The notes under the pieces are model-generated. The model made no database searches. It was not told where the DNA came from and saw nothing but the letters and a program-made list of their open reading frames with translations. Positions 8,185 to 43,857 of a stretch of 64,000 bases of DNA are shown here, in pieces (the stretch's first letter is position 1; each line of letters begins with the position of its first letter). A program made the translations under genes and the position numbers. Source of the DNA: Chrysemys picta bellii (lineage: Eukaryota); assembly GCF_011386835.1 (NCBI RefSeq), contig NC_088794.1, positions 22,568,001 through 22,632,000 on the forward strand. Direction: 5' to 3'.

Positions 8185-8190
8185 AATAAA
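8185..8190 (+). terminator. Poly(A) signal of A1
   Basis: AATAAA followed by a GT-rich tract; conserved at 29141 (A2) and 41242 (A3), and at the homologous position in B genes (18092, 51146). Confidence 0.65.
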
Positions 8191-13800: not shown

Positions 13801-16800
13801 AAACTGGCCTTCCCTTAAAAGTCAGCAAATTCTCATCCCCTGGTGGATGTGGTTACAGGACAGAGCTCAGATGGGCTCCTCAGAGCAGGGAAATTCCAGG
13901 AGACAAATGCAAAAATCCTAAATTCACCTGTTCAGGCTTTTGATACCTACTAGTATCATCTACAAATTATCTTTTATATTGCCATGTGTTGTGGGTCTTG
14001 CGTAAAAGCCAATAAGAGCTTTAAAGAGGCTGGGCCTTCACCCCCAAAATTCTGACTTTTTTGAGGTTTAAGGCTGAGTTTGTGCCATTTGAGTTTTTGC
14101 TTGAATTAACTTTCAGTGTGCATTAAAAGGGAGTCGATCCGAACTGGGGTGGGTGAAATAAGAACTGAGCTGAATCCTGACCAAATCTCAGACTGAACAC
14201 GGCCCTTGGTCAAGGATCATGAACGCTGCATTTTGCTTTGATATTCCTCCTTTTCTGCCCTTCTCACTTTCAGCCAGTGCAGGAAGCAGCAATACAAGAA
14301 CAGGCCATAGGAACAGCCACTCTGGTGGAGGGTCTGACTTGGGTGGAAATGGACTCCTCACAAGAAGAGGCCCTTCCCCATAAAATCTGCAGCCTAATAA
14401 TAGCAAAGGAGTTCAGCTAAGTTAAGCTAAGTTCTGAGCGTTTGGATGCTTATACGAATGGGACCTCTGGTCCTTGTGAGGTTTAACCGGCAGCGCTCAA
14501 AATTTGCTCTCTTGTCATGCCCATGCTTTTCTCTGTCATACAATAAGATTCTGCAAGGCACTGGGGCCCAGTTCTTCAAAAGAATTTAGGTGCCAAACTC
14601 CCACTGAAATCAATGGGAGTTAGGCACCTGAATTCTTTTGAAGAACTGGGCCTGAGTGCTCTGGAGATGAGGGAATTTAGCATCTCCGAGAAAGCGCTTA
14701 ACACCTTGCAAGATCAGGTGCACAGAAATTGGAGATTACATAGCCCTTCCCTTCTGGCCAATGCACGATGGTTCCCGTCAGTATATTTCTCTGGGCTTTC
14801 TCCAATCTCGTTTTAATTATCTCATTTGAGGAGCTTCCACCACTTCCCTCGCAAGATTATTCCAAAGACCAAGAGACCTCACTCATAGGAATATTTTTTG
14901 CTGGTAAATGGCAAAAGGATAGGGTGGATTTCCACAGGAAACCCATGTTACATGCTCACTGCTAACAAACAAGTTAACTCTGTTCTTCTTATTCCTCATG
15001 ACGAGGACATGGCTACAAGGGAAAGGTTCACTCGTACTATCTTCATCATGGGGTGTGTATATTTCCAGAATCTTATGATAGGACAGCTTTTGTGACTACA
15101 TCCCGTCCCACTGACGACATAGGAGCCGTCCTCCCAACTGCAGCCAGGAATGATCAGCAGAGGTAAAGACAGAAAGAAAAAAATTCAGGCTCAGCTAAAT
15201 GCAAGATTCACAGTAAAAGGGTGGAAATCTCCATTCCCAGTTCACCCTAATTGTTGTGCGTGTGGTTTCCCATAGCTGGTACTCGGAGGTCAATCTCAAT
15301 GTCCTCTGTATCATGGTTGGATTGCTGGGCACTAAATTCCTGACAGCACTCCTGATCTTTATCGTCGCCAGCCAAAGGAGAAGCAGAGCCACAGAGCAGG
15401 AGATCCACGGCCCGGAACAAACACCAGCTCCTTCCCCCTCCCCCCCAGGTAATCTCACTGAGTGTATACGGGGCAGGATGAACCCCAGCTGGGAGAGCGT
15501 TCCCCAGTGCTGGGCCCCAGACATAAGCAAGGTAGAGGAGTCTGGGGAGGATGAGCAGTGCGAACCGGGAGGAAGGCTGAAGGATATAACTTAGCTGCTT
15601 GTCAAGGAAGACAATAAAACATTTGAGAAGCTAACTGTAGCAATAACCCCTCATGGGTCACCAGTTCTGTTTGACCTGACAGCAGAGACCTTGATTACTT
15701 GCACTAAAGGGGTAACTCCACATTAGCTGGCGGCAGTAGTAGTCTGTTACCTCTATGTGGACCAGCCACTAGAGGGTGACGCAGCACACACTTTGACTCA
15801 TGCCCCTCACGTAACAGGCAAAAAGCGAGCCATCAAAGACATTAATGATATTAACAAAGGCAATATTGTAAGAATAATTTTAAAACATACAGGCAACTTT
15901 AATGGATTGTGGGATCTCTCTTCCAGGCCTTTAATAAAAGTCTTTCCAGGTGGAGAATGTTTAAAGGTTTCAAATCCAGTGGATCTGAGTGAGCTAGAGG
16001 TGCCACTCAAACCTCCAACCCTGCCACAATGGCAAAAGGACCCTTTAACCTGTGACAAAGGGAGCTGAGGATACCAGCAATGCTTAGAATAGCCCAGATT
16101 TCCTTCCTTTCTTCAGGATAAACAGTATTTACTAGGATCTCAGATTGGTCTTTCAGGTTTCTCATGCAAACTGTATAATCTGTTGTGGGGTTTTCCTCTC
16201 TAGGGGGTGAAAAGTCTGTTCATTTGTCCTCTGGCCCTTTCAGTCCTTGGCCTTGCTATTGAAGTGGCCTAGAAAGAGGCCATTTAGTGCAATTCTGGTG
16301 GCGGTTTTGTGTGTGGATGAAGAGGACACCTGTCCACTGGACACTGAAGTGAGATTCACCACTCCTTTAACGAAAGCCATCGGAAGTGAACAGTCAATGC
16401 AGACCTGGGCTACATTTAAACCATCCCATTCTCAGACTAGTTACACTAAGGAGAAAATGCCTAGAGGCAAAAGGGACCAAAGATACGATGTTTGGCATCA
16501 CGCTCATCTAGTTCACGAGTGAGATGATCGGTCTAGTACCTTAGCCAATGTGTCTCGGGAACAATTTACAGGGTACAATAGTCTATTTGTAGGCTTGGCA
16601 GAATTCAATTTTTGTTATATAATTTTAACATAAAATATTGATGGTTATTTAAGCTTTTGAAACGTTTATCTATTTAAATTTTCACTGTTGCAGGAAATTA
16701 TGGGGGAAGTCAGACAATTATTTAATGCCAGTAAATGTTGAGATTCGAACAGTTAAAGCTTTGTCACAGCTAAAACACAAATTGTCAACATCACATGCCA

Positions 16801-17700
16801 CAATATACAAAGTAAATATCCTCACATCAAACTGTGATCCATTCTCAAGCAGCATTTTTCTTACTTTGACTATCTGTACATTTAGATGATTATCGATGAA
16901 AACATTTTTGCATTGGCTTGTGCGTGTATGATGAAACCAACATTTACCGATAAAAATCCAATCCTTGTGCATAGCTCAAACATATGATACAGCGGACCCT
17001 CGCTAGAACGCGCGTCTATATAGCGCAAAATCGCTTATAGCCTGGGACCACGCATGGATCCCAAATGTAATTACTTTCATTGGAATCCATGGTAATGCAG
17101 TCCCCACTATTACGCGGGACTGCGCATGGATCCAAAACCCCACGTTCTAGCTAGGGTCCAGTGTACTAAAATAAAATCCACTGTTGTGTTTCAGATCTCC
17201 AAGGCTAGTTACACTAGGGAGGGTCAAACACCACCACAGATGTGACTGCCCCATTATCCACACCAGGGTGACCCTGTTAACTGCAATCATTACTATTTGT
17301 ATTATGGTGGCACCCAGGAGCTCCAGTCATGGATCAGACCCCCCTTGTGCTAGGCACTGTACAAACACAAAACAGAAAGTTTTTCTCTGCCCCAAAGAGC
17401 TTGCAATCAGAGTAGAAGACAATAGACAAGAAATGCATGCAACAGACAGAGGGAACTAGGTAACAGTAAGATCATACTGACCAGCCTGATAAGCAGTGGT
17501 CACAATCCTGATTTACCCTGCCACCAATGGAGACCCAGGCTTCAAATATGGGTGGGGGCAGAGGCACGTTTTCAGAAAAGCAGACAGCTCCTTGAAACCA
17601 GCATGGATTCCTCATCCCTTACTCCATACTTAACCAATTTCCTGTTTTCTTTCCAGGATTAAAGAGAGGAAAGGAAAACACTAGTAAGACAAGGATGTGA
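10801..17700 (+). CDS. Gene B1: two-IgV TREM/NCR2/CD300-like receptor, activating type, 341 aa
   Basis: Exons: 10801-10843 (signal MGCFPARLLLLALAG), 11555-11905 (V1, CHYNEHKYLQSEKFWCK..EDSGIYWC), 13464-13784 (V2), 15069-15162 (stalk), 15276-15448 (TM NVLCIMVGLLGTKFLTALLIFIVA), 17657-17700 (tail GLKRGKENTSKTRM*). GT-AG introns, consistent phases, 1026 nt. Confidence 0.85.
11993..12346 (+). mobile_element. 5'-truncated CR1 LINE 3' end (intron 2 of B1)
   Basis: Typical CR1 3' UTR ending in ttcttatg-type repeats; 8-bp TSD attcccag (11985-11992, 12347-12354). Confidence 0.85.
12573..12859. mobile_element. Old AT-rich TIR element in intron 2, shared by A- and B-type genes
   Basis: agagctggttgg...ttggccaactcta; diverged homolog in A1 at about 3401-3687 (gagctggtt...gaccagct) and in the other copies. 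It predates the A/B split. Confidence 0.5.
14565..14652. mobile_element. Short palindromic MITE-like element
   Basis: ggcccagttcttcaaaagaatttaggtgcc...ggcacctgaattcttttgaagaactgggcc hairpin; paralog at 47625-47712. Confidence 0.65.
16592..16978. mobile_element. Degenerate AT-rich hAT-like element
   Basis: Starts taggcttggcagaatt with a decayed end aaaaatccaatccttg; paralog at about 49643-50030. Confidence 0.4.
16990..17163. mobile_element. Tc1/mariner (Tigger-like) MITE, 174 bp (last intron of B1)
   Basis: TA|cagcggaccctcgctagaacg...cgttctagctagggtccagtg|TA: imperfect 21-bp TIR with TA TSD. Confidence 0.75.
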
Positions 17701-18091
17701 TGGAAGGAGAAGTAGGCAAAGAAAAAGAATTCCAAGAGTCTTTCCAGCCAAGCTCCCAACTCCTCCAACACTTATACATATACACGCAGAGATGCTCACA
17801 CAGATATTGACACCTGCAGAGAGAGACATGCTTCGGATGAGAAAGTTCTGCTCAGTTTTCCCAGTGCCTCCAGCCATGACAGATAAACCTTTGCTTGCTA
17901 ACCCCCGTTTTACCTGCAAAACTAATAGACGATGCCTAGGTGCAAAAGGAACTGAAGACACAGCATTTGGCAATGTGCACACCTAATTCCGGAGAGAGAC
18001 TTGGAGTGTTGCACCTGAGCCATCTAGCCATCAGGACCAATCTCCAGGGGCCGCAATGGGGTATAGGCATTACTCACACATAGGATGCTAA

Positions 18092-18097
18092 AATAAA
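18092..18097 (+). terminator. Poly(A) signal of B1
   Basis: AATAAA homologous to the A-type signal (aataaa(a)ggcattgttg). Confidence 0.6.
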
Positions 18098-18126
18098 AGG
18101 CATTGTTGGGTGTCAGATTGACAAGA

Positions 18127-21425: not shown

Positions 21426-22208
21426 CCATACATTTGGGAACGTTGGCAACTCTGTCTCACACACACACTGGGGGTGGGCAGGGGAAGGACAGACCCCAAA
21501 AACCCTATAATCTTTCTATGTAAAATTCATGATTTGGGGACAAATCATGATTTTGTGGGGGCTAACTCATGATTTTTGAGCCTGGCAGTAACGCACATAA
21601 AAGCTAGGTGCTGTTTTTATTCTCAAAACCACAGCTCATTTCACCTGGGTTTGAGGTTCTCTGCCTTGCAATCATGGAAGAGGAATCCAGGGCCAGGCTG
21701 GGGGTGGTAAGGAGAGAGCGGGGCTCTTTGCTCACAGTCTTTAGACTCAGGGAGGATGAATCCTGTAGGTTTCCTACCCGCAGCAGCTTGGATCTTTGAG
21801 GACCAGAGTTTCAGCACTATTAGCTGACAATAGCACAAGAACCAGCTGCACAAGACAGAACAATGGGCTCGGAGCCTGGTCACTGCTCGGTGTTAAAAGA
21901 TCTGTTGTTTCCTGATTTCACAAGAAACCAGGCTGCAAAAATAGGGTAACCGAGCTATGGTTTTTTTTCCACTCTCTTATTGCGGTGTCATCCGCATGCG
22001 AGTTTGACTTATCACTGGCCCCAAAGCAAAGCTGAATCTGGCCATCCCGGGAGAGGATCTCGTTACACAATGCAAAACACTGACACCAGCAAGAACTCAC
22101 CCCCAGAATGCTGCACCCGAACGGCCAAACCCAGTACTAGCAGCAATGCTCTCCTTTCCCCCGCACTGGTTGTAAACCCAAGGCAGAGCCAAACAAAACT
22201 GACTTATA

Positions 22209-22482
22209 GGGTTTGTCTACACACACAATTGGTTTGTGGAAAGTTGAGGTGTGAGCGTACGCTGTACTAGCCTGCCGCGGACTAACTGCCCACGTGACCC
22301 TGCTGACGCTGACTAACAGTTCGTCAATCCACTGTGACCTACTCCTCTTCGAAACAGGATTAGCTCAAAACACACCGACGAACCGTTAATGCGCATCGGC
22401 GGGTGCACAGGCACTAACCGTGCGGGCTAGTGTGGGTCTCACACCAGCTTGCTGCCAACTAAATATTTGTGTAGACAAGCCC
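22209..22482. mobile_element. PIF/Harbinger-type MITE upstream of A2
   Basis: Paralogous copy of 716-989. Confidence 0.78.
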
Positions 22483-23549
22483 ATACTCCCACCCCGCACA
22501 CACACACACCCACACACACCATGAAGACTATAGCTGGTTTTCCCATCCCGTGAAAAATGTCAAGATTTCAAAATGTTTCCCCTACCACACTGGGATGAAA
22601 CCGAGTCCTTTTGAAGTTTTTTTGTGAAACACCCAATAGGAAGAAGATCAGAATAACCAATAGCCCAGGAGTTATGGCAGTCACCTCAGTTCTGAGTGCC
22701 CAGTGCGCTGTTCCAATGAACAGGTCATTATTTATACAAAGTTGGAACAGCTTCAACAGGAGAGATTGAGAGAGACGCATCCCAGAACAGCCAATAGGAC
22801 TGGATGGATCAGCTGAGCCAAGCCATGCATTCCAATCTCCCACATGGAGGCGAACCAACATGATCCCGCTTCCCTTTCCTCAGCACTGTAATCCTCCTCC
22901 TTGTTGTATGGCTTTAAACAAAAATATCTTCTCCGGGTCAACATCCCAAACACAGAGCTAGAGGATGACCCAAGGGACCCTGATGGGAAGCAACTTGGGG
23001 GGTGCTCTACTAAGGAGATGGCATGGCCTAATGGATTGGGCACTGGCCTCAGACTCAGGAGACCCGTGTTCTGCTCCCATCTCTGACCAGCTGTGTAATA
23101 CCAGGCAAAGGAATTGCCCATCTCTGTTTTCCTAGCAGGACAATGTAGCTATGGCTAAGTCCCCGCTTTATAAAGTGCTTTGAGATCTAGGGATACAAAA
23201 CTAAAAGCTGTTCATGTACTATACACCAAGGCTTCAAATGTCATTAAAAATAGAACATCTGCTACTCTCTCTTTTTTCCCCTCACTCCCCATTTCCAAAA
23301 GCAGATATCTAAACATGTGCTAAAACGAGAAGCAGCTGATAGCCAAAATGCAGGCTTCCTGTGTGAAGGCTCAGATTAGGACTGTGGTAGAAGCATCTTT
23401 CCAACAATTGCAAACGATACTGTCACTCTGGAGCATGACGACACAAACAGTGACAAAGGGAGTTCACCGCCGACCCATATTGACAGCAACAAAGAAGCCT
23501 CAATGCTGCATTCCACCTCTCCAAGATCTAAACCACTTCCCATTACAGG

Positions 23550-26500
23550 ATGGGTCGCTTCTCAGCCCGGCTGCTATTGCTGGCACTAACAGGTAAGGAA
23601 CCGAGAGATCGGCCCTCCCCTCCCGTAGACACAGAACATTCCGTTTGCTCTTGCACTCGTAGCACACTGCGCTTGTTTGCTTTTGCACTTATCATTTTGG
23701 CGGGCTGCAAGCAGGCACGGAAATTTGGCACCCAGCTATTTGCAATGACGAGAAATGCTTGGCTTGCTGGGGCTCCATATTTTCCCCCAGTCATTGCATA
23801 TGTTATAGTGGAATGAAAAGCCATAGAGTGGATGTCAGAGAGGGTTTAACCAACCCCAATTTTTGGAAACAGACTTTTCTCATGCTAGAAGGGATTCCTG
23901 TCTCCAAACCAACCTAGGAACTGGGTGCCATGAGTCTGGAGAAAGTAAAAGAGAATGTTCTGTAGGGAACAACCCTGCAAGATGACTCAAGGATTAGATG
24001 ATCAGACCAGTGCCAGTTTACCAGACAGAGCCAGCCTAGCTCCTGATCAGTTGTTCACATGCTAACCTGCAATGAAGATCGGGGGACATAAGCTTCACAG
24101 TGGGGAAGAACATGGGAAGTTGAATGGGAAGGAGGCAGTGGCAATGGATCGAGTCTCACCACAGAAGCTCCTTTACACAGAGATGGGAGCTTGGAGAACC
24201 AGTCACAGCAGCCTGAAGTTGCAGCATTGATGGGCAGGTCATTCTCACCAATATTTTCTTTCCTTGGCAGGGCCATGCCTGGCAAGAGAGGAGCTGGAAT
24301 TGGTGACAGCTGTACAGGGAAGCTCTTTCAGTACAACGTGTTACTACGATAATGACAAGTATTCACTAGAGGAGAAATTCTGGTGCAAGATGCTGTCAGA
24401 CCAGGAATGCAACAGCAGACTCTTTCTGACCATCCGAGCAAAGGGAGGGAAATACCTAAATATTGCACCAAAGAGAAGGGTCGATCTCACAAACTCGGGA
24501 ACAGGCTGGATTTCTGTGTCCATGACGGAGCTCCGGATAGAGGATTCAGGAACATACTTCTGTGGGGTTTACGATCATCAGACAATTATCCTATTGAAAA
24601 AGATTCAATTGATTGTTTCTTATGACGGTGAGCTAAAGACCTGTCATGACCTAGTTGGGACACAAATCAGCTCAAACCAGGATATTCCAAATTAGACTAA
24701 TGCTCCATTCCTATTCCAAAGAAAACACAGGGTCTATAGATGTCAATTCCCCAGTATATGTTATAGAGAGAGATGGTTAAAATAATAACCTTCAATTACA
24801 TATCTAGACATAGAAACACCATGTGTATCATACACATATATGTATGTATTTAGATGTACACTTATCACATATCTATGTAAAAAGAAGAGCTGGTTAGGAA
24901 CATATTTCTCCCCCTCTTCCCCCCAGCCCACCTCACCCCCACCCCCAAATAATTTTAACCAAAAAACCCCAAACAAACATTTTTAGTCTTTTTGTCAAAA
25001 CAATGAAAACCAAAAGGTCTGGGTTGAAAACTCAAAAAAAATCAGTTTTCAATTGTTCAATTAAAACTCTTTTTTTCTTTAAATGAAAATGAACATTTCC
25101 CCCAAATGTCCTATTTATTCAAAAAGCCATTTTGCATCAAAAATTGAACCTTTTAGACAGAAAATCTTTGACCAGCTGGGATAGAACCCCCATGTGATGG
25201 AGAAACCCCACTCCCAATTTGAAGTCCTGGTTACCAGTTGGAATGCACAATAACAAGACTGGGCTTCTTCATTCACACCCTCCCTGTCCTGGTTGAGTGT
25301 TGTTTGTTGTCACTGCTGGTGAAAGGTGCTGCAATGACACCTCTGGACCCTTATCCTTACACACAGGGGAGGCCCAGCGTGGTCAGTTGCAGGGCAAGTT
25401 TCCCCGAGCTACCCCAGCCAAACTACCTCAGCCCTGTCCTGGGTGGTCCCCCATTCTAGAGAGGAGAGAGGAATCCCCACTTCAGGGCTAACTCAGTCCT
25501 CAGCTCCTCGGATGCTAAGACTGCCAGGAGCAGAGGGGCCAGTGGTGAAGGTGCATTTTCAGAGTGGTGGCAGCATTAGCAGATGCTCAGGCTGGTTCAG
25601 GGCTGCCCCGTGGTGATTGATGTGCAGTTTTCCAGTGGTAATTGTGCACAGCCAATCCTAGGAAATATTTTCCTTGGGCTGGAAGAGATTATTTCCATGT
25701 CTTTTGCAAGCTCCTTTTGGGCTGGGGTTTGGTCTGATCCTTTGTCTTCCCATTTAGATGCACGGGGGCATTTATACACCCGCGGGGCTTTTATACACCT
25801 CTCTTTCCTTCCCTTTCTCACAATAACCAGTCACCGGTCTCTCTCTCCAGCTCCCATGAGGCTATCTGCAGAAGAAGGAGGCTTCATCTCCTTAAATTGT
25901 TCCTATTTTTTGATGGACGACAGCAGGATACCTAATAAGTTTACCTGGTGCAAAATGGTAACCGCAACCAGATGTCAACCTGTCGTCAGCATTGAGATTG
26001 ATCAGATTCTTAATATGCGAGAAAGGACCAGGATAAAGCTTGACCGGTGGAACAGAGTGATTATAGTGACGCTGGTGGCGCTCCAGCTACGTGACTCGGG
26101 GGAATATCATTGTCAGACCCATCTCCAGGGAAGTACCGTGCTACTGAAAATGATCACACTGAATGTTTTGGGTGAGTTACTCAAAGAATAGTGGCCTTCT
26201 CTTAAAAGTCAGCAAATTCTCATCCCCTGGTGGATGTGATAGCAGGGCAGAGCTCAGATGGGCTCCTCAGAGCAGGGAAATTGCAGGAGACCCAGAGACA
26301 ACTTCTGAATTTACCTTTTGAGACTTTTGATATTTACTAGTATAAAACAAACTCGGCCAGATCCTCTGCCCACGTAAATCAGAGGGGAATCATTAGTTGT
26401 TATGGACCTACACCAATTTACACCAGCAAAAGAAATGGCCCCAGAACTGATCTGAATGTTGCCCAAATCTCTGACTGAACTCATCCCTTTGTTATAGTTC

Positions 26501-28751
26501 ACAAATATTAAACTTTTCTTTGATCACTTGATAATTACCTGTTCTGTTCATTGCCTCTGGGGCACCTGGCATTGGCCACTGTCAGAAGACAGGACACTGG
26601 GCTAGATGGACCTTTAGTCTGATCCAGTATGTCCGCTCTTATGTTCGATACCCATTTTCATGCCTCTCCACCCTTCCTACTCTGAGCCAGTATAGGACAC
26701 AGAAATACAGGAAATAAATTGGGAGAAGCTATTCCTGTGGTCTTCGTGACTAGACTGAAAATGGAGCCTCACAAGGGATAGCCTGTCCCCGAGACAATTC
26801 CATCCCAATAACCCCGAAGAGGGTCAGATCATAAACTGAGCACTTGGATCCTTATCCAAGGGGACCTTTTCCCATATGTGGCTTATCGGTCCCTGCTCAC
26901 ACGTATTCTCCGGCAGTAGCCATGCTTTCCCTTTTATCTGTCATAGACCCCAGACCTACCAGGTCCATCTCACCGGAGACACTCAGCAATTGGCAAGGTT
27001 GGGTGCCTGGAAACCAATGGTTGTCTAGACTATCCCTCTGGCCATTGCAGGGTTGTTCCTTCTAGTAGATTTTCCAAGGCGTGTGCCATACTAGCTGTAA
27101 ATGTCTCCAGTGAAAAAGTGTAGCCCAATGCGTGGTGTGGGGACGTGGGAATCAGAAGATGTGAGTTCTAGTTCCATAGCTGCTACTCACTTTCTGGTGG
27201 TATCGACACTAAACTTTTTTTGCTCAGATACTACGGTGAGAGGCACCACATAACAACCTGGATAGAACGCACAGGACTTCCGTGAGGGATTATTGGACTA
27301 CACTCCAATAAGCCTCAGGGCTAGCACTCCTCTGGGCGGTAAAGAACTCCTGCATCACACCCTATTGTCACATTCTCACTGTTAACCAACAAGCGATCAC
27401 TCACGATTAGTACGAGAAGGCTCTAAAGCCTCGTCATAATTTCCCATCCCTTCCAGATGTCAAGCAGGCCAGGGCCATGCAGGGGAGGGTCACTCACTCT
27501 TGTGTTTATTTTCAGGAAAAAGTGTGTATTATGATACAGTTAATGAGACTACTTCGCCTCCCACTAACGAGGGGGAAACCGCCCACCCAACTGTGGCCAG
27601 CAACAAGGAGCAGAGGTATGAACATCAAACAAACAAAAGTCTTCAGGGCTGACTTTAGGGTCCCCCGAGGGGATTTTCTGGATCTGCTGCAGATTAAAAG
27701 GGTGGGGTTGTAAAAGACACACACACACCCCATCCTCCGAGTCTCTTACAGGGTTTGATGTAACCCCCTCAAGGCAGTGGAAAGACACAGACTGGCTGGA
27801 CTAGGAGCTGGAGCAGGCCCTTAGTGAGCTCTCTGTTCTTTCCACTCCATAGGAATGACAGATTTCAGAGTAGCAACTGTGTTAGTCTGTATCCGCAAAA
27901 AGAAGAACAGGAGTACTTGTGGCACCTTAGAGACTAACAAATGTATTAGAGCATAAGCTTTCGTGGAGTGGGCTGTAGTCCACGAAAGCTTATACTCTAA
28001 TACATTTGTTAGTCTCTAAGTTGCCACAAGTACTCCTGTTCTTCTTTTTCCATAGGAATGATTCGTTTCCATCAGCTGCCTTTGCCTTCAGATTAAAGCT
28101 CTTGTTTAGGACAACTGTCATCTTTGCAGCCTCCCATGAGTCCCAGCATGTGTGGGCAGGGAGAACGTTAGATAGAGACAGTGATTGTCTTTGTCTTTCT
28201 ATGTTACCAAAATACAAGATTCCAATTAAAAGGTGGAAAACTTCCTTTCCTAGTTAAAGCTAAACTGTTCTATGTGTGGTTTCCCATAACAGCCTTCCTG
28301 AGGCCCATTTCAGTGCACTCCTCTGCATCATTACGGTACTCCTGGTTGCTAAATTCCCGACAGCCGTACTGATCTTTACCATCGCCAGCCATCAGAGGAG
28401 CAGAGCCACGAGGGAGGGGAGCCAAAACCTGAACCAACACCAGCACCTCCCAATCACAGGTGATCTCATGAGCGTTCACATGACAGAATTAACCCCCACT
28501 GGGAGACACTCCACCGTGCTGGGCTACAGATCTAGGGAAACAAGAGGGAAAAGAGCCCTGGGGAACTAGAATAAGCTTCCAGGGCAAACTTTGCTGCTTC
28601 CTAAGGGAGAGGATAAAGGCTGAAGCTAAATGAACGTGTAATGAGCCTGCCATCCGTATGGGAGGTTGTCATCAACTGTCTCCATTTCTGATCTCTCACC
28701 CGCTTTCTAATCTGTGTTCCTCTTCCATTTCCAGTACAAGAGAACAGGTAA
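23550..28751 (+). CDS. Gene A2: two-IgV receptor, activating TM/tail, 5' half resembles gene I (probable chimera), 351 aa
   Basis: Exons: 23550-23592, 24271-24627, 25851-26171, 26947-26997, 27516-27615, 28293-28459 (TM ..VLLVAKFPTAV..), 28735-28751 (VQENR*). GT-AG introns, open frame, 1056 nt. Confidence 0.87.
26522..26646 (+). mobile_element. Short CR1 3' fragment (intron 3 of A2)
   Basis: ggcacctggcattggccactgtcagaagacagg..ctcttatgttc; shared with I, absent from A1 and A3. Confidence 0.7.
27859..28048. mobile_element. Penelope-like terminal-repeat fragment forming a long inverted repeat (intron 5 of A2 only)
   Basis: tttcagagtagc..gttagtctgtatccgcaaaaagaagaacaggagtacttgtggcaccttagagactaacaaatg.. 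followed by its reverse complement; flanked by a direct repeat tccataggaatga (27846-27858, 28049-28061). The family call is from recalled turtle repeats. Confidence 0.7.
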
Positions 28752-31700
28752 CGCTTGGACAGGATGGGAGGAGGAGGAAGAGGATGGACAGAAAAATAAA
28801 GAACTCCAAGAGTCTGTCCGTCCAAACTTCCAACTCCCCCAGGACAAACGCACATACATGTAGCGATGCTGCAGAGATGGGGACAGGATGAGAAAGCTCT
28901 GCTCGGTTTTCCCCAGGCCCCCATGCCGGATAACCTTTGCTTGCTATGCCAGGCTTTGCCTGCAAGGCTAATGGAAAATGCTTCCCTGCAAAAGAAACCA
29001 AAGATGCAGCATTTGGCAGTGCATTTGCCTAGCGCACGAGTGGGACTTTCACTGGCGTATGTTAGCAGCCACAGCGTGTCTCGGGTGCAATCTATAGAGG
29101 GTGCAATGGGCTATATGAATTACTCACCCAGGTGATGCTGAATAAAGGGCATTGTTGTGTCTCATGTGTCTTGTCTTGATTCACTGAAACTCAGTGTTGT
29201 CATGAAAAACTAGCAGTTTTACTAAATGTGTCCAGCCTGGCTGGATGTCTCCAGAAAACCAACTGAATGCTCCCCACGTGTCCAGGGAGATACCTTACCC
29301 AGAGGTGGACCACAATGGGGCAGTAGTGCACTGGATCAGGTAATCTTGGGCCATCTCACTCGAACACTCCCAGTACATAAAACAAGACCAGGAATCCATT
29401 GCAGGGCTGAGTTAGCATTTAACAACACAGAGTGGGAGCAGAGAGATGGGTTAAAACTGTGTTTTATCAGTTATATTCTGCAGCTAGTAACTTGTGACAG
29501 CCGAGGATACCTCTCTGTGTTTCCCCACAAAGCACAGAGATGGTCAGTGCCCTAAGATTCACACTGGGTCTGTAGGAACATAAAACAAATCCTGCTATCA
29601 GGTGTCAGTGGCCCCACCCTGAGAGTTAAAGGAGAATTTTCTCTCTCACCCTATGTATATGCTGCAATCGGATATGTGATTTGTAGTTTGTGCAAACATA
29701 CCCGTGGTCACTTTAATCTGGTTAACACACTAATAATAGCAGTAAACATGTGGCAACATGGATTACAGGGCAGGCTGAAGAAAACTGCCCAGGAATCCTG
29801 GGTATATATTTGCATTGTTAGCCTGCACCGAGGTCTATGCCACGGTGTCTTCACTGCTGTTTTAAGCCATGTTAGCTTGATTAAAGCTAATACATGTGTC
29901 TACCTAAGCTGCAATCACACCTACGATTGCAGTTTAGACACACCCGGAGATTGAGACCTTTCCCAGGGCGATAGAAAGCCTGGTGCTCTGCACCAGGCTC
30001 TGGTTGCCACCTGCTGCAAAGGCCCTCGCTGCTCTGCCATATCAGTGTGTGGCGTTATCCAAGATGGTTATCTGCACAGTCCCCTCCCCAGAGGGCCAGA
30101 GCTAAGAGCCACCAAACTCACATCACCTCAGAGAGCAGCGCACACACAGTGCCAAGGGACAGAAACAATGTTGTCTCTGTTCGGGGGGATTAAGGCCTGT
30201 CATAAGGATCCTCACAAACAATGTACCAGCGTGGGGCAACCCCCTTGGGGATAGTCCCTGTGTCAGAGGATTGGGGCCTATCTTAGAGAGCCTTCTTTCT
30301 ACCAGACCAGGCTTTCCTCTCACGGAATTAGCTCACTCCCTGAGGTAATTCTGTCTGAGCTCTCAAGGAATCCAGGGAAGCAATTTTCAGCAGTTTCATT
30401 TTAAGCCTTCTTAACAAAACAAAACAAAAAACCCTCATCAACTCTTCTCTTATAGTCTGTGCTGGCCAAGGAGTCCCTTCCCCAAGCCTGACCTTCACAC
30501 CAGTAACTCCAGTAACCAACATTTCCTGGCTCTTACCACCGAGTCTCAGCAATAAAGGGCTCCACGCAGTCTCTCTTCTGTCCGTTTGGTTTCTGGCGCA
30601 ATTCCTCTTGTACCATGCTCTGGATCCCACTAGCAGCTGGGATACTGGCTGTTTTGCCCGATGAGTCTGCAGGCATATGGAAGCTGTTACCTGTACTGCC
30701 TCTCACAAATAGGCTGTGAGCTGAGACCCACCAAACTCATGCCACCTCAGAGAGCAGTGCCCGCAGTGCCAGGAAAAAGAGACGGTGCTGTCTGTTTGTA
30801 GCCAATGAGACAAGGCAGGGGAGTGATACCACAATTTGATGCACACACAAAGCATCAAGTGAGCTGAAGACTCACTGTTTGCTGGTACCTGACACAATGT
30901 TTCCTGGTGGTGTCGCTAGGTTCGGACACAATGCGTGCACACCCCAGATAACCAGCTGCAGCCACGTCCTGTCCATTCGGGAGCCTTTGCAGTTTGTGTC
31001 CATGGGCCTCGGGTTTATACGGGAGCAGCACGCGCAGCAAGTGGCCGGCTCAGCCAGGAGACATCCACTTCCTACCCACTAGGTTATGAGACAGACATCT
31101 GCTCCAACACAGACCCAGGGTCTGAATCACTTGCCCCAAAGCTGCAAGTTTACCTGAAAACAGCTCACAGAAGTGTGCTTGTCTTTAGCACTCAGATGCC
31201 CAACTCCCAATGGGGTCTAAACCCAAATAAATCCGTTTTACCCTGCATAAAGCTTATGCAGGGCAAACTCATAAATTGTTCACCCTCTATAACACTGATA
31301 GAGAGATATGCACAGTTGTTTGCTCCCCCAGGTATTAATACATACTCTGAGTAAATTACTAAATAAAAAGTGATTTTATTAAATACAGAAAATAGGATTT
31401 AAGTGGTTCCAAGTAGTAACAGACAGAACAAAGTAAGTCACAAAGCAAAATAAAATAAAATGCGCAAATCGATGCCTAATCAAACTGAATACAGATAATC
31501 TCACCCTCAGAGATGCTTCAGTAAGTTTTTTCTCAGACTGGACATCTTCCAGGCCTGGGCACAATTCTTTCCCCTGGTACAGCTCTTGTTGCAGCTCAGG
31601 TGATAGCTAGGGGATTCTTCATGATTGCTCCTCTTTCCCTTTGTTCTCTTCCACCCCTTTATATATCTTTTGCATAAGGCGGGAACCCTTTGTCCCTCTG

Positions 31701-32704: not shown

Positions 32705-33450
32705 TGTCATAACTATAAAGGGAAGGGTAACAGCTCTCCTGTGTACAGTACTATAACATCCCTCCTGGCCAGAGACTCCAAAATCCTTTTACCTGTAAAG
32801 GGTTAAGAAGCTCAGGTAACCTGGCTGACACCTGACCCAAAGGACCAATAAGGGGACAAGATACTTTCAAATCTTTGGGGGGGGGGAGGAGGGAAGGCTT
32901 TTGTTTGTGCTCTTTGTTTGGGAAGTTATTCGCTCTTGGGACTAAGAGGGACCAGACATCAATCCAGGCTCTCCACATCTTTCTGAACAAGTCTCTCCTA
33001 TTTCAAACTTGTAAGTAAACAGCCAGGCAAGGCGTCTTAGTTTACCTTTGTTTTCTCAACTTGTAAATGTACCTTTTACTAGGGTGTTTACCTCTGTTTG
33101 CTGTAACTTTGAACCTAACGCTAGTGGGGGGTCCTCTGGGCTCCTTAAGTTTGATTACCCTGTAAAGTTATTTTCCATCCTGATTTTACAGAGATGATTT
33201 TTACCTTTTCTTTAATTAAAAGCCTTCTTTTTAAGAACCTGATTGATTTTCCTTGTTTTTAGATCCAAGGGGTTTGGATCTGTATTCACCAGGGAATTGG
33301 TGAAGAGTCTCTCAAGGCTACCCAGGGAAGGGAATTAGCATCAAGCGTGGTGGCAGCGGACCAGATCTAAGCTGGTCGTTAAGCTTAGAAGTTTCATGCA
33401 GGCCCCCACATTTGTACCCTAAAGTTCAAAGTGGGGAAGCAGCCTTGACA
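32705..33450. mobile_element. Solo LTR (Gypsy/ERV-like), 746 bp
   Basis: Termini TGTCAtaac...ttgaCA (inverted tgtca/tgaca), flanks cagtg/taggg. Absent at the homologous sites before A2 (about 21942) and I (about 54153), which read ctgcaaaaa|tagggtaacc. Confidence 0.8.
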
Positions 33451-33717
33451 TAGGGTAACCCAGCTGTGGTTTTTTTTCCACTCTCTTATTGCGGTGTCAT
33501 CCGCATGCGAGTTTGACTCATCACTGGCCCCAAAGCAAAGCTGATCCTGGCCATCCTGGGAGAGGATCTCGTTACACAATGCAAAACACTGACACCAGCA
33601 AGAACTCACCCCCAGAATGCTGCACCCGAATGGCCAAACCCAGTACCAGCAGCAATGCTCTCCTTTCCCCCGCACTGGTTGTAAACCCAAGGCAGAGCCA
33701 AACAAAACTGACTTACA

Positions 33718-33991
33718 GGGCTTGTCTACGCACACAATTGGTTTGTGGCAAGTTGAGGTGTGAGCGTACGCTGTACTAGCCTGCCGCGGACTAACTGCCC
33801 ACGTGACCCTGCTGACGCTGACTAACAGTTCGTCAATCCACTGTGATCTACTCCTCTTTGAAACAGGATTAGATCAAAACACACTGACGAACCGTTCATG
33901 CGCATCGGCGGGTGCACAGGCACTAACCGTGCGGGCTAGTGTGGGTCTCACACCAGCTTGCTGCCAACTAAATATTTGTGTAGACAAGCCC
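33718..33991. mobile_element. PIF/Harbinger-type MITE upstream of A3
   Basis: Paralogous copy of 716-989. Confidence 0.78.
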
Positions 33992-35059
33992 ATACTCCCC
34001 CCCCCACCCCCCACCCCACACACACACACCATGAAGACTATAGCTGGTTTTCCCATCCCGTGAAAAATGTCAAGATTTCAAAATGTTTCCCCTACCACAC
34101 TGGGATGAAACCGAGTCCTTTTGAAGTTTTTTTGTGAAACACCCAATAGGAAGAAGATCAGAATAACCAATAGCCCAGGAGTTATGGCAGTCATCTCAGT
34201 TCTGAGTGCCCAGTGCGCTGTTCCAATGAACAGGTCATTATTTAAACAAAGTTGGAACAGCTTCAACAGGAGAGATTGAGAGAGACGCATCCCAGAACAG
34301 CCAATAGGACTGGATGGATCAGCTGAGCCAAGCCATGCATTCCAATCTCCCACATGGAGGCGAACCAACATGATCCCGCTTCCCTTTCCTCAGCACTGTA
34401 ATCCTCCTCCTTGTTGTATGGCTTTAAACAAAAATATCCTCTCCGGGTCAACATCCCAAACACAGAGCTAGAGGATGACACAAGGGACCCTGATGGGAAG
34501 CAACTTGGGGCATGTTCTACTAAGGAGATGGCATGGCCTAATGGATTGGGCACTAGCCTCAGACTCAGGAAACCCGTGTTCTGCTCCCATCTCTGACCAG
34601 CTGTGTAACACCAGGCAAAGGAATTGCCCATCTCTGTTTTCCTAGCAGGACAATGTAGCTATGGCTAAGTCCCCCCTTTATAAAGGGCTTTGAGATCTAG
34701 GGATACAAAACTAAAAGCTGTTCATGTACTATACACCAAGGCTTCAAATGTCATTAAAAATAGAACATCTGCTAATCTCTCTTTTTTCCCCTCACTCCCC
34801 ATTTCCAAAAGCAGATATCTAAACATGTGCTAAAATGAGCAGCAGCTGATAGCCAAAATGCAGGCTTCCTGTGTGAAGGCTCAGATTAGGACTGTGGTAG
34901 AAGCATCTTTCCAACAATTGCAAACGATACTGTCACTCTGGAGCATGACGACACAGCCAGTGACAAAGGGAGTTCATTGCCGACCCATATTGACAGCAAC
35001 AAAGAAGCCTCAATGCTGCATTCCACCTCTCCAAGATCTAAACCACTTCCCATTACAGG

Positions 35060-38000
35060 ATGGGTCGCTTCTCAGCCCGGCTGCTATTGCTGGCACTAAC
35101 AGGTAAGGAACCGAGAGATCGGCCCTCCCCTCCCGTAGACACAGAACATTCCGTTTGCTCTTGCACTCGTAGCACACTGCGCTTGTTTGCTTTTGCACTT
35201 ATCATTTTGGCGGGCTGCGAGCAGGCACGGAAATTGCGCACCCAGCTATTTGCAATGACGAGAAATGCTTGGCTTGCTGGGGTTCCATATTTTGCCCCAG
35301 TCATTGCATATGTTATAGTGGAATGAAAAGCCATAGAGTGGATGTCAGAGAGGGTTTAACCAACCCCAATTTTTGGAAACAGACTTTTCTCATGCTAGAA
35401 GGGATTCCTGTCTCCAAACCAACCTAGGAACTGGGTGCCATGAGTCTGGAGAAAGTAACAGAGAATGTTCTGTAGGGAACAACCCTGCAAGATGACTCAA
35501 GGATTAGATGATCAGACCAGTGCCAGTTTACCAGACAGAGCCAGCCTAGCTCCTGATCAGTTGTTCACATGCTAACCTGCAATGAAGATCGGGGGACATA
35601 AGCTTCACAGTGGGGAAGAACATGGGAAGTTGAATGGGAAGGAGGCAGTGCCAATGGATCGAGTCTCACCACAGAAGCTCCTTTACACAGAGATGGGAGC
35701 TTGGAGAACCAGTCACAGCAGCCTGAAGTTGCAGCATTGATGGGCAGGTCATTCTCACCAATGTTTTTCTTTCCTTGGCAGGGCCATGCCTGGCAAGAGA
35801 GGAGCTGGAATTGGTGACAGCTGTACAGGGAAGCTCTTTCAGTACAACGTGTTACTACGATAATGACAAGTATTCACTAGAGGAGAAATTCTGGTGCAAG
35901 ATGCTGTCAGACCAGGAATGCCACAGCAGACTCTTCCTGAGCATCCGAGCAAAGGGAGGGAAAAACCTAAATATTGCACCAAAGAGAAGGGTCGATCTAA
36001 CAAACTCGGGAACAGGCTGGATTTCTGTGTCCATGACGGAGCTCCAGATAGAGGATTCAGGAACATACTTCTGTGGGGTTTACGATCATCAGACAATTAT
36101 CCTATTGAAAAAGATTCAATTGACTGTTTCTTATGACGGTGAGCTAAAGACCAGTCATGACCTAGTTGGGACACAAATCAGCTCAAACCAGGATATTCCA
36201 AATTAGACTAATGCTCCATTCCTATTCCAAAGAAAACACAGGGTCTATAGATGTCAATTCCCCAGTATATGTTATAGAGAGAGATGGTTAAAATAATAAC
36301 CTTCAATTACATATCTAGACATAGAAACACCATGTGTATCATACACATATATGTATGTATTTAGATGTACACTTATCACATATCTATGTAAAAAGAAGAG
36401 CTGGTTAGGAACGTATTTCTCCCCCTCTCACCCCAGCCCACCTCACCCCCATCCCCAAAGAATGTTAACCAAAACACCCCAAACAAACATTTTTAGTCTT
36501 TTTGTCAAAACAATGAAAACCAAAAGGTCTGGGTTGAAAACTGAAAAAAATTCAGTTTTCGATTGTTCAATTAAAACTCTTTTTTTTTTAAATGAAAATG
36601 AACATTTCCCCCAAATGTCCTATTTAATCAAAAAGCCATTTTGCATCAAAAATTGAACCTTTTAGACAGAAAATCTTTGACCAGCTGGGATAGAAACCCC
36701 ATGGGATGGAGAAACCCCACTCCCAATTTGAAGTCCTGGTTACCAGTTGGGATGCACAATAACAAGACTGGGCTTCTTCATTCACACCCTCCCTGTCCTG
36801 GTTGAGTGTTGTTTGTTGTCACTGCTGGTGAAAGGTGCTGCAATGACACCTCTGGACCCTTATCCTTACACACAGGGGAGGCCCAGCGTGGCCAGTTGCA
36901 GGGCAAGTTTCCCCGTGCTACCCCAGCCAAACTACCTCAGCCCTGTCCTAGGTGGTCCCCCATTCCAGGGAGGAGTGAGGAATCCCCACTTCAGGGCTCA
37001 CTCAGTCCTCAGCTCCTCGGATGCTAAGACTGCCAGGAGCAGAGGGGCCAGTGGTGAAGGTGCATTTTCAGAGTGGTGGCAGCATTAGCAGATGCTCAGG
37101 CTGGTTCAGGGCTGCCCCGTGGTGATTGATGTGCAGTTTTCCAGTGGTAATTGTGCACAGCCAATCCTAGGAAATATTTTCCTTGGGCTGGAAGAGATTA
37201 TTTCCACGTCTTTTGCAATCTCCTTTTGGGATGGGGTTTAGTCTGATCCTTTGTCTTCCCATTTAGATGCAGGGGGGCATTTATACACCTGCGGAACATG
37301 TCTCTTTCCTTCCCTTTCTCACAATAACCAGTCACCGGTCTCTCTCTCCAGCTCCCATGAGGCTATCTGCCAAAACAGGAGACTCCATCTCGCTAAATTG
37401 TTCCTATTTTATGATGGACGACAGCAGAAGACCTAGTAATTTTACCTGGTGCAAAATGATAACCGCAACCAGATGTCAACCTGTCAGCAGCGTTAAGTTT
37501 GATCAGATTCTTAATATGCAAAAAAGGACCAGGATAAAGCTTGACCGGTGGAACAGAGTGATTATAGTGATGCTGGTGGCGCTCCAGCTACGTGACTCGG
37601 GGGAGTATCATTGTGAGACCCATCTCCAGGGAAGTACCGTGCTACTGAAGAGGATCATACTGAATGTTTTCAGTGAGTTTCTCAAAGAAAAGTGGCCTTC
37701 CCTTAAAAGTCAGCAAATTTTCATCCCCTGGTGGATGTGATAGCAGGGCAGAGCTCAGATGGGCTCCTCAGACCAGGGAAATTGCAGGAAACCCAGAGAC
37801 AACTTCTGAATTTACCTTTTGAGACCTTTGATATTTACTAGTCTTATAAACAAACTCGGCCAGATCCTCTGCCCACGTAAATCAGAGGGGAATCATTAGT
37901 TGTTATGGACCTACACCAATTTACACCAGCAAAAGTAATGGCCCCAGAACTGATCTGAATGTTGCCCAAATCTCTGACTGAACTCATCCCTTTGTTATAG

Positions 38001-40852
38001 TTAATAACCCTGAAGAGGGTCAGATCATAAACTGAGCACTTGGATCCTTATCCAAGGGGACCTTTTCCCATATGTGGCTTATCGGTCCCTGCTCACACGT
38101 ATTCTCCGGCAGTAGCCATGCTTTCCCTTTTATCTGTCATAGACCCCAGACCTACCAGGTCCATCTCACCGGAGACACTCAGCAATTGGCAAGGTTGGGT
38201 GCCTGGAAACCAATGGTTGTCTAGACTATCCCTCTGGTCATTGCAGGGTTGTTCCTTCTAGTAGATTTTCCAAGGCATGCGCCATACTAGCTGTAAATGT
38301 CTCCAGTGAAAAAGTGTAGCCCAATGGATGGTGTGGGGGCCTGGGAATCAGAAGATGTGAGTTCTAGTTCCATAGCTGCTACTCACTTTCTGGTGGTATC
38401 GACACTAAACTTTTTTTGCTCAGATACTACGGTGAGAGGCACCACATAACAACCTGGATAGAATGCACAGGACTTCCGTGAGTGATTATTGGACTACACT
38501 CCAATAAGCCTCAGGGCTAGGACTCCTCTGGGCGGTAAAGAACTCCTGCATCACACCCTATTGTCACATTCTCACTGTTAACCAACAAGCGATCACTCAC
38601 AATTAGTACGAGAAGACTCTAAAGCCTCGTCATAATTTCCCATCACTTCCAGATGTCAAGCAGGCCAGGGCTATGCAGGGGAGGGTCACTCACTCTTGTG
38701 TTTATTTTCAGAAAAAAGTGTGTATTATGATACAGTTAATGAGGCTACTTCGCCTCCCACTAACGAGGGGGAAACCGCCCACCCAACTGTGGCCAGCAAC
38801 AAGGAGCAGAGGTATGAACATCAAACAAACAAAAGTCTTCAGGGCTGACTTTAGAGTCCCCAGTGGGGATTTTCTGGATCTGCGGCAGATTAAAAGGGTG
38901 GGGTTGTAAAAGACACACACACACCCCATCCTCCGAGTCTCTTACAGGGTTTGATCTAACCTAGGGTTACCATATTCAAACATTTAAAAAAGAGGACACT
39001 CCAGGGGGCCCCTCCCCCGCCCCAACTCCGCCCCTTCCCCGCCCCCGGCCCCGCCCCAACCCCACCCCTTCTCCGCCCCCATTCCAACCCTTTCCCCAAA
39101 GTCCCTGTCCCAACTCTGCCCCCTCCTCTGAGCACCCCGCATTCCCCGTCCCGCTCTGATCTTGGTTGGGGGTTGCTAAGTGCTTCCCTGCTCCCCACTT
39201 GCCCTGCAGCCTCTATGCCCTTGCCTGCCCTGCTCCTCCTCACCCTGCAGCCTCTGCACCCCTCCGCCCCCGCAGCCTCTGTGCCTCCTGCTCCCCACTC
39301 GCCCTGCAGTCTCTGCATTCCCCCCTGCAGCCTCTGTGCCTCCTGCTCCCCACTTGCCCTGCAGCCTCTGCGCCCCCTGCTCCCCACTCACACTGCAGCC
39401 TCTGCACCCCCCCCCACAGCCTCTGTGCCCCCTGCTCCCCACTCGCACTGCAGCCTCTGCACCCCCCCACAGCCTCTGTGCCCCCTGCTCCCCACTCGCA
39501 CTGCAGCCTCTGCACTCCCCCAGAGCCTCTGTGCCCCTTGCTCCCCACTTGCCCTGCAGCCTCTGCACCCCCCCCCCCGCAGCCTCTGTGCCTCCTGCTC
39601 CCCACTTGCCCTGCAGCCTCTGCACCCACCCGCCCCCGCAACCTCTGTGCCCCCTGCTCCCCCCTCGCCCTGCAGCCTCTGCACCCCCCCCCACAGCCTC
39701 TGTGTCCTCTGCTCTCTACTCGCCCTGCAGCCTCTGCACACCCCCCCCTGCAGCCTCTACACACACAAACACACACACACACCCCTCACCCGGCAGAGGG
39801 AGAGCTGCAGGCTCCACGTTGACTCAAACACTTCCTCGCTGCTCTGTGGGGGAGGAGGGAGCGGGGGAGGGACTTTGGCTGCTAGAAGCCCTAGTGGCTG
39901 CGAGCGGCTTTCAATCATGCCAGGCGTCCAATCAGCCACGCTGCACTCCGCAGGAGGGGAAATCCCGGACATTTCTACTTCATTAGAAATCCCCCCCGGA
40001 CGGCCATTTAAGGCTGAAAAAGCCGGACATGTCCGGGGAAACCCGGACGGATGGTAACCCTATCTAACCCCCTCAAGGCAGTGGAAAGACACCCACTGGC
40101 TGGACTAGGAGCTGGAGCAGGTCCTTAGTGAGCTGTCTGTTCTTTCCACTCCATAGGAATGATTCGTTTCCATCAGCTGCCCTTGCCTTCAGATTAAAGC
40201 TATTGTTTAAGACAACTGTCATCTTTGCAGCCTCCCATGAGTCCCAGCATGTGTGGGCAGGGAGAACGTTAGATAGAGACAGTGATTGTCTTTGGCTTTC
40301 TATGTTACCAAAATACAAGATTCCCATTAAAAGGTGGAAAACTTCCTTTCCCAGTTAAAGCTAAACTGTTCTATGTGTGGTTTCCCATAACAGCCTTCCT
40401 GAGGCCCATTTCAGTGCATTCCTCTCCATCATTATGGTACTCCTGGTTGCTAAATTCCCGACAGCCGTACTGATCTTTACCATCGCCAGCCGTCAGAGGA
40501 GCAGAGCCACGAGGGAGGGGAGCCAAAACCTGAACCAACACCAGCACCTCCCACTCACAGGTGATCTCATGAGCGTTCACATGACAGAATTAACCCCCAC
40601 TGGGAGACACTCCACCGTGCTGGGCTACAGATCTAGGGAAACAAGAGGGAAAAGAGCCCTGGGGAACTGGAATAAAGTTCCAGGGCAAACTTTGCTGCTT
40701 CCTAAGGGAGAGGATAAATGCTGAAGCTAAATGAACGTGTAATGAGCCTGCCATCCATATGGGAGGTTGTCAGCAACTGTCTCCATTTCTCATCTCTCAC
40801 CCGCTTTCTAATCTGTGTTCCTCTTCCATTTCCAGTACAAGAGAACAGGTAA
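35060..40852 (+). CDS. Gene A3: two-IgV receptor, activating type, paralog of A1, 351 aa
   Basis: Exons: 35060-35102, 35782-36138, 37352-37672, 38143-38193, 38712-38811, 40394-40560 (TM with Lys), 40836-40852. GT-AG introns, open frame. Confidence 0.88.
38962..40062. mobile_element. Non-autonomous hAT-like DNA transposon with minisatellite (intron 5 of A3)
   Basis: Same TIRs and TSD as 5963-7005; 58 bp longer, with the difference in the repeat region. Confidence 0.82.
39185..39760. repeat. Compound minisatellite, paralogous array with a different unit order
   Basis: Same subunits as 6185-6700, different number and order. Confidence 0.9.
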
Positions 40853-43800: not shown

Positions 43801-43857
43801 CAGTACCGAAGACGCCTGGAGCCTGCATTCCACTTCTCCAAGACCTAAGCCTACAGG

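Follow-up and report, generated by a model that had tools for sequence, protein, structure and literature searches.

The A-type receptor genes of the turtle Chrysemys picta bellii are chimeras of two neighbouring genes, which were joined within an intron at a microhomology of six nucleotides, AGGAAT (imperfectly about 12 nucleotides). One of the A-type genes, A2, carries an insert of 190 bp in this intron, and the fusion scar is older than the insert. All coordinates refer, unless another locus is named, to the window, which is the whole analysed stretch of 64,000 nucleotides of contig NC_088794.1, also listed as CM062321.1 (positions 22,568,001 to 22,632,000). The window comprises a tandem array of receptor genes that are all encoded on the plus strand and contain two V-set domains each. 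The chimeras combine the left part of gene I, whose tail includes an uncharged transmembrane (TM) exon and three motifs resembling immunoreceptor tyrosine-based inhibitory or switch motifs (ITIM/ITSM) in the last exon (IIYAML, VTYANV, and VEYATI), with the right part of A0, a TREM2-like gene. The insert is located in intron 5 of A2 at 27859-28048. Judged by its architecture, the inspection of its motifs, and published descriptions, it is quite likely an ordinary insertion, namely a 5'-truncated fold-back copy, with head-to-head halves, of a very abundant Penelope-like retroelement (PLE) of turtles, which integrated only after the fusion.

The homology between I and the A genes stops after ...ccataggaat (60056 in I, which corresponds to 27856 in A2 and 7103 in A1). 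The end of A0 lies in the 7.9 kb upstream of the window (L001 7938-25732 corresponds to window 1-17795 with 100% identity). The tail of A0 is 96-98% identical to the tails of the A genes, and this homology starts exactly where the homology between I and the A genes ends. Therefore, the A genes are chimeras of I and A0. At the junction, the sequence of A0 reads ..gctccagaggAGGAATttGATTCG.., that of I reads ..ccactccatAGGAAT followed by acttagg.., and that of the A genes reads ..ccactccatAGGAAT followed by GATTCG... Each parent is collinear with the chimera on one side of this single junction, and the protein models agree with it. Two V-set domains and the stalk exon were contributed by I, and the lysine-bearing TM exon, which opens all A-type tails (in A2 from 28293), and the remaining tail by A0. 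The TREM2-like proteins P0024 and P0026 have the same TM region as the one encoded by the A2 TM exon. The exons were searched one by one, and public protein models were used in place of a joined, spliced model. The exons next to the junction in A2 and the parental site in I are:

27516-27615, plus strand: stalk exon of A2 (..KSVYYDTVNETTSPPTNEGETAHPTVASNKEQ), the last exon derived from I, in agreement with the protein models P0023 and P0004
28293-28459 (end approximate), plus strand: TM exon of A2 with a lysine in the membrane span (..ALLCIITVLLVAKFPTAVLIF..), the first exon derived from the TREM2-like gene, according to P0023
60046-60056: parental site in I (..tccataggaat), which is followed by the intron specific to I (acttagggg..), an uncharged TM exon at about 60545-60645, and the ITIM exon at 61423-61734

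The turtle genes resemble the paired receptors of the KIR, LILR, SIRP, and CD300/TREM type, in which an activating gene also combines the ectodomain of an inhibitory neighbour with the charged TM exon of another neighbour, and in which both parents also flank the chimera within a tandem array. They differ from those receptors in that the turtle junction can be narrowed down to a 6-nt microhomology and both of its parents are available, and in that a retroelement arrived later and separately. The origin of the activating partner of an inhibitory receptor in deirochelyine pond turtles can thus be followed at base resolution, with the parents and an outgroup arrangement available.

The insert was found in A2 only, as had been supposed from the sequence, and A1 and A3 contain a single uninterrupted copy of the target instead. 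It is flanked by a perfect direct repeat of 13 bp, tccataggaatga, which represents its target-site duplication (TSD), and its long inverted repeat consists of two arms of 71 nt (27897-27967 and 27979-28049) that are spaced by 11 nt and pair at 69 of 71 positions (97% complementary). Folded as DNA, the insert region reaches -81.9 kcal/mol compared to -19.4 +/- 3.0 for shuffled sequences (z = -20.6). The splice donor of the stalk exon is 243 nt upstream of the insert start and the splice acceptor of the TM exon 244 nt downstream of the insert end. The insert and its empty counterparts are composed as follows:

27846-27858: left copy of the TSD, tccataggaatga, with the AGGAAT microhomology at 27851-27856 and the scar between 27856 and 27857
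27859-27896, minus strand: unpaired 38-nt tail, a 3' extension of the element that is present at the left end only; the element sense is on the minus strand, and the tail ends with ...ctgaaatctg at 27859
27897-27967, minus strand: left arm, a 5'-truncated half of the element with its sense on the minus strand, which stops inside helix II of a putative hammerhead motif
27968-27978, plus strand: 11-nt loop (gggctgtagtc), which corresponds to the 5' strand of helix II and its loop, belongs to the right half only, and was assigned by comparison with the complete motif at 24160-24200 of the Malaclemys locus L002
27979-28048, plus strand: right arm, a 5'-truncated half of the element (..cacGAAAgctta...) in plus-strand sense, which ends at the proximal start site of reverse transcription (ttttt) and has no tail
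28049-28061: right copy of the TSD, the same 13 bp as the left copy
7093-7105: empty site in A1 with one tccataggaatga and the scar between 7103 and 7104
40150-40162: empty site in A3 with one tccataggaatga and the same scar

The order of the two events can be read from the TSD. The dinucleotide ga at the end of the left copy stems from A0, and the string tccata at the beginning of the right copy stems from I. Both copies hold bases from both parents, and the element must therefore have entered a target that was already fused. In addition, the scar is present in A1, A3, and the A gene of Malaclemys, all of which do not contain the insert. Thus, the insert did not make the switch between the modules. 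The original prediction had placed the insert at the very base of this switch and had proposed, as a mechanism, either a recurrently broken site or the repair of a break, due to the element endonuclease or a cruciform, by which an I-type 5' half was united with an A-type 3' half. The location holds insofar as the TSD spans the junction, although the agreement is one to within 2 bp, as the TSD extends 2 bp to the right of the last base of I homology. The proposed repair falls with the identical junctions in the genes without insert, and the insert itself is left as an ordinary retroelement insertion without a causal link to the module switch.

Because inverted repeats can also come from library or assembly errors, the insert could in principle represent a palindromic chimera of long reads. 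This is hardly conceivable given its perfect TSD, its one-sided tail, and its family-typical build. The read data were Logan unitigs of organisms that are denoted by codes, and unitigs break in the repeat. A short-read unitig over the left junction (X15, from a public run) spans 27801-27888 without mismatches, and its depth of 37.8 corresponds to a single copy, while the flanks that are common to three to four paralogues have depths of about 112-127 in the same run. With the left junction at single-copy depth, the insert is not an artefact of the assembly. In another organism, a contig with A2-type single-nucleotide polymorphisms (SNPs) begins 4 nt inside the right end of the insert (X19, from 28045).

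The assignment to a Penelope-like element, which had been suggested from the hairpin, is supported by the head-to-head arrangement of the 5'-truncated halves, the tail at one end, the TSDs of 12-13 bp, the putative hammerhead remnant, and the very high copy number. In the unitigs of four coded organisms (27300-28700), the word depth over the element is 2-7 million compared to about 40-130 in the flanks. The ends of the family copies cluster at 27896-27903 (mirrored at 28043) and less often at 27859-27863, and these two sites are about 38 nt apart. Two further copies show the same design. The sister copy in Malaclemys (L002 24067-24251) is a head-to-head fold-back with a TSD of 12 bp, ATTCTCAGACTA, which is located within a B gene and is found at the same place in L003 and L004. 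Its insertion site is empty in C. picta (window 16428-16439). A third copy, L005 8195-8319, also comes from a Malaclemys locus, has a 12-bp TSD, TCAAGTAATTGG, and consists of one long half and a head-to-head tail only. Empty sites are thus available for two of the three copies.

The sister copy L002 contains at 24160-24200, as judged by inspection, a putative complete minimal hammerhead (GCAU/CCGAAGA/A/GUGGGC-UGUA-GCCCAC/GAAA/GCUU/AUGC), which is composed of helix I (GCAU/AUGC), the core CCGAAGA, a bulged A, a 6-bp helix II with a UGUA loop, GAAA, and a palindromic AGCU. Minimal hammerheads are known from PLEs, including those of turtles, and the motif in L002 shows the features that were listed for PLE ribozymes by Cervera and de la Pena (PMC4209133), namely the 6-bp helix II, the bulged base preceding it, the G10.1-C11.1 pair, and the palindromic AGCU in place of helix III. 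The A2 copy retains only the 3' part of the motif, its halves meeting at 27964/27965 within helix II, and encodes no open reading frame (ORF). Because the CNGANGA box is missing, the A2 copy is, as far as can be told from its sequence, unable to self-cleave and not a ribozyme. The Rfam hammerhead models did not score on the A2 copy, nor on the sister copy L002 with its full motif, and the only Rfam matches on these two copies were spurious sub-threshold hairpins of the miRNA type. Autonomous PLEs encode a telomerase-like reverse transcriptase with a GIY-YIG endonuclease, and neither the window nor the fetched loci contained a full-length family member with such an ORF. A 19-mer of the element matched no metagenome contig in an exact-word scan, and a full-text literature search for its sequence gave zero hits as well.

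PLE insertions have been described as 5'-truncated, often with an adjacent inverted 5'-truncated copy, and with a one-sided tail of 30-40 bp (PMC8557442). The A2 insert agrees with such fold-back copies of endonuclease-positive elements of the Penelope/Poseidon type in the 5' truncation, the head-to-head halves whose 3' ends point outward, the 38-nt tail at one end, the TSD of variable length (12-13 bp) at a cut site that contains A/T, and the family size of tens of thousands of copies. It differs by being only 190 bp long, by lacking an ORF, and by containing only the 3' part of the ribozyme motif, and in the motif of its family position 4 of the hammerhead core is C and not U. The purified PLE protein of a lizard cleaves and extends both target strands with a preference for ATT in AT-rich DNA, and its reverse transcription starts at two neighbouring internal positions that are separated by the length of the tail (PMC11167929). 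The A2 insert and the two sister copies are thus natural examples of what these in vitro experiments of 2024 predict, namely priming on both strands and reverse transcription starts about 38 nt apart. Twin priming by LINE-1 elements also leaves the TSD intact and also joins two cDNAs from both target strands inside the insertion. However, the inverted piece of LINE-1 is normally derived from a region upstream of the direct piece, whereas both A2 halves copy the same 3' region. In addition, the A2 halves overlap completely over 71 nt and start at two defined internal sites of reverse transcription, which is PLE-like.

The integration into intron 5 of A2 probably proceeded by target-primed reverse transcription when an A-type gene already existed. 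The endonuclease of the element would have cut the two strands 13 bp apart, with the nick in the top strand after ..GGAATGA, inside A/TT, and each of the two 3'-OH ends would have primed a cDNA on the RNA of the element. The left half would have been started at the distal start site, which would have generated the 38-nt tail, and the right half at the proximal site without a tail. Two cDNAs of like sense would be able to pair only at the self-complementary helix II (GTGG/CCAC) and might have been joined there, which would have produced the inverted repeat of 71 bp and put its apex inside the ribozyme. That the stems of the ribozyme are the sole places at which such cDNAs can anneal would be a simple reason for the position of the hairpin apex in the hammerhead. 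The hairpin of the L002 copy has its apex at the palindrome of helix I, GCAT/ATGC (GCATATGC). Classical twin priming, in which the 13-nt overhang would anneal to the RNA, was dismissed because the bases do not pair upon inspection.

An 8-nt string, CTGTTCTT, is present at 27833-27840, 5 bp upstream of the TSD, and again at 28036-28043 at the end of the right arm of the element, where it has the same offset from the right TSD copy as the target copy has from the left one. This repeat could be due to chance, the string being pyrimidine-rich, or could reflect a microhomology used in resolving the insertion, although a simple mechanism was not found.

The scar does not separate two histories of A2. 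Left of the scar, 5582 ungapped sites were compared between A1, A2, A3, and I, of which 70 are private to A2, 70 to I, 31 to A1, and 31 to A3, and 46 split A1 and A3 from A2 and I (1.25% for A2, 1.25% for I, and 0.82% for the stem of A1 and A3). Right of the scar, where A0 takes the place of the fourth sequence, 1.41% of the 2404 sites are private to A2 and 1.25% to A0, and 0.62% split A1 and A3 from A2 and A0. A2 and A1/A3 differ by 2.08% to the left of the scar and by 2.04% to its right. Maximum-likelihood trees including the Malaclemys genes have the topology (A2,(mtA,(A1,A3))) on both sides, with I as the sister on the left and A0 as the sister on the right (support 83-100). Because the site patterns are the same on both sides with just the parent swapped, A2 is the first-branching A lineage throughout, there is no switch specific to A2, and its I-like states are ancestral.

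It had been claimed that A2 changes from I-like to A-like at the insert, and one might accordingly regard A2 as a secondary chimera that arose through repair of a break at the element or cruciform, whereby an I-type 5' half became linked to an A-type 3' half. A2 does share with I the sequence gcaggccctt, the absence of a hAT-like transposon, a 307-bp segment, and the 46 SNP states, but with B as outgroup 18 of the 24 polarisable sites among the latter are derived in the stem of A1 and A3, and the I-like markers are also found in the A gene of Malaclemys. The assignment of diagnostic SNPs to each side gave an A2 that is I-like on the left and equally A0-like on the right, where it shares 15 sites with A0. 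Given also the equal distances, the congruent trees, the TSD copies with bases of both parents in each, and the identical scar in genes without the insert, a secondary chimera is highly unlikely. A2 resembles known breakpoints induced by palindromes or cruciforms in that a rearrangement junction coincides with an inverted repeat that is long and near-perfect and has a short spacer. In contrast to these, the junction in A2 predates the repeat, occurs without it in other gene copies, and is placed 40 nt away from the stem, at the edge where the element has its tail, and not at the stem or apex.

Two length differences set A1 and A3 apart from A2. The first is a non-autonomous DNA transposon of roughly 1.04 kb (window 5963-7004 and 38962-40061) that is present in A1 and A3 only and is separated by 98 bp from the scar downstream of it. 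Its terminal inverted repeats read AGGGTTACCAT.., its TSD of 8 bp is ATCTAACC (hAT-like), and its interior holds a GC-rich array of repeats of about 55-58 bp. The absence of this transposon from A2, I, and the Malaclemys A gene identifies it as a derived insertion of the A1/A3 lineage. The second is the 307-bp segment (window 26500-26806 and 58700-59005), which A2, I, and the Malaclemys A gene have and A1 and A3 do not. It cannot be regarded as a shared derived insertion because it has no TSD, only its middle is derived from a repeat, and the Malaclemys A gene has it too; it thus appears to have been deleted in the stem of A1 and A3.

Several points speak against regarding the insert as an ordinary PLE copy that happened to integrate after the fusion. 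Since neither a full-length family member nor an Rfam score was obtained, the membership in the Penelope-like elements rests on architecture, motif inspection, and published descriptions. The co-location with the scar is locally improbable: the probability of a 13-bp TSD falling across the scar is about 0.15% for a single insertion into the 8.5-kb gene, and about 0.2% if three family insertions, 12 scar or parental sites, and the roughly 220 kb examined are considered. Furthermore, A2 branches first and is located between two B genes, where a tandem-duplication model puts the original chimera, the two mismatches between the arms (2/71) allow an insertion age of up to the whole A2 branch, and the target preference has been judged on three copies only. 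The co-location was, however, spotted after the fact among hundreds of windows of this genome, and we think that the TSD came to lie on the older scar by coincidence, which we hold to be likely.

The improbable location would be expected if the sequence ..CTCCA(T/G)AGGAAT.. were a preferred or a fragile and accessible site that is cut recurrently, so that breaks in I and A0 resulted in the fusion and a later Penelope cut in the insertion into A2. The TSD indeed coincides almost exactly with the microhomology block of both parents, the fused site GAATGATTC has ATT on both strands with the top-strand nick in A/TT, and the lizard PLE protein cuts both strands, thereby producing double-strand breaks, and prefers ATT in AT-rich DNA (PMC11167929). 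However, the bottom-strand nick is not at ATT, and a motif of 3 nt is found hundreds of times per gene. The TSDs of the three copies are unlike each other and have no motif in common (TCCATAGGAATGA, ATTCTCAGACTA, and TCAAGTAATTGG), and the flanks of other genomic copies are near-random with a consensus agreement of 0.45-0.63. A coincidence of 1 in 500 is also to be expected across hundreds of windows, and recurrent cutting is therefore considered unlikely. The more specific proposal that a Penelope endonuclease repeatedly cut ..CCA.AGGAAT.. in the paralogous introns, that breaks in I and the TREM2-like gene made the exon shuffle, and that the integration into A2 is the visible trace of this activity, appears decidedly improbable. 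If true, it would make a retroelement nuclease a driver of paired-receptor evolution.

The divergence of the arms (2/71, about 1.4% per arm) equals the whole terminal branch of A2 (1.25-1.6%). It could thus be imagined that the element already inserted into the first chimera and was precisely lost, by slippage between the 13-bp repeats, on the branch that gave rise to A3, A1, and the Malaclemys A gene. Precise deletions of hairpin-forming inserts between direct repeats are known. This course of events is nevertheless quite improbable since it requires an extra event and since the age interval is very wide with just two mismatches. Even if it were true, the TSD would still put the insertion after the fusion, and the element would have had no part in making the chimera.

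The arrangement of the genes differs between the turtles. It is A0-A1-B1-A2-A3-B2-I in C. picta, A0-A-B-I in Malaclemys, A0-B-I in Emys orbicularis, which has no A gene and in which the two parental sites are intact, and A0-I only in Trachemys. The A gene of Malaclemys contains the scar, the 307-bp segment, and the sequence gcaggccctt, and lacks the insert and the hAT-like element. The I-type arrangement is kept in Trachemys, Malaclemys, Emys, Mauremys, and Chelonia, and I-type proteins of 404-413 amino acids with this stalk and the ITIM tail are found across turtle families. The A-type TM region was detected in TREM2-like proteins as far out as the sea turtles. In the protein searches, A-type proteins were found in Chrysemys and Malaclemys only. 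The opposite direction, in which an A2-like gene with the hairpin would have given rise to I through a deletion that began at the element, due to fragility of the hairpin or to an endonuclease homing to the tail, is ruled out because A0 matches the A tails from the same base on, because Emys has both parents and no A gene, and because the conservation of I-type proteins, including this ectodomain and tail, extends across turtle families. A stretch of 6.8 kb in the 5' region of the Malaclemys A gene (L002 2768-9547) has no counterpart in the C. picta window and is probably a large transposable-element insertion.

According to a self-comparison of the window, the receptor genes are located as follows:

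448-9641, plus strand: A1
about 10634-18125, plus strand: B1
21941-30609, plus strand: A2
33450-42698, plus strand: A3
43693-51179, plus strand: B2
54153 to the window end, plus strand: I

The large units 238-18125 and 33240-51179 are 98.2% identical, and the identity is about 97% beyond 18125/19207. This drop and the gene order in C. picta would fit a history in which a tandem duplication made the chimera (A0-B-A2-B-I), A2 was subsequently duplicated, and unequal crossovers occurred later. The B genes could not be used as outgroup across the junction because they do not have about 360 bp of this intron and are uninformative there. A relic of a B-type stalk exon right of the scar was also considered and discarded, the local alignment scoring like those of shuffled sequences (z = 0.9).

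The public protein model of A2, P0023 (365 amino acids), does not use the splice donor of the TM exon and continues with intron sequence (..LPITGDLMSV.., window 28459-28566), and the A1 model P0004 (334 amino acids) splices to ..VQENR. The tail of A2 may be altered, or P0023 may be merely one predicted isoform. Two isoform models, P0001 from C. picta and P0002 from Gopherus flavomarginatus, combine an A/I-type first domain with the stalk and TM regions of the neighbouring B gene, and represent either read-through transcripts of adjacent receptor genes or annotation artefacts. At window positions 27548 and 27789-27790, A2 reads A and A,G, respectively, while the sole covering contigs in four of four runs read G and C,C. 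These states private to A2 are missing from the listed unitigs, yet the A2-specific unitig over the left junction is present. Possible reasons are alleles specific to the sequenced individual, omitted short unitigs, or consensus errors.

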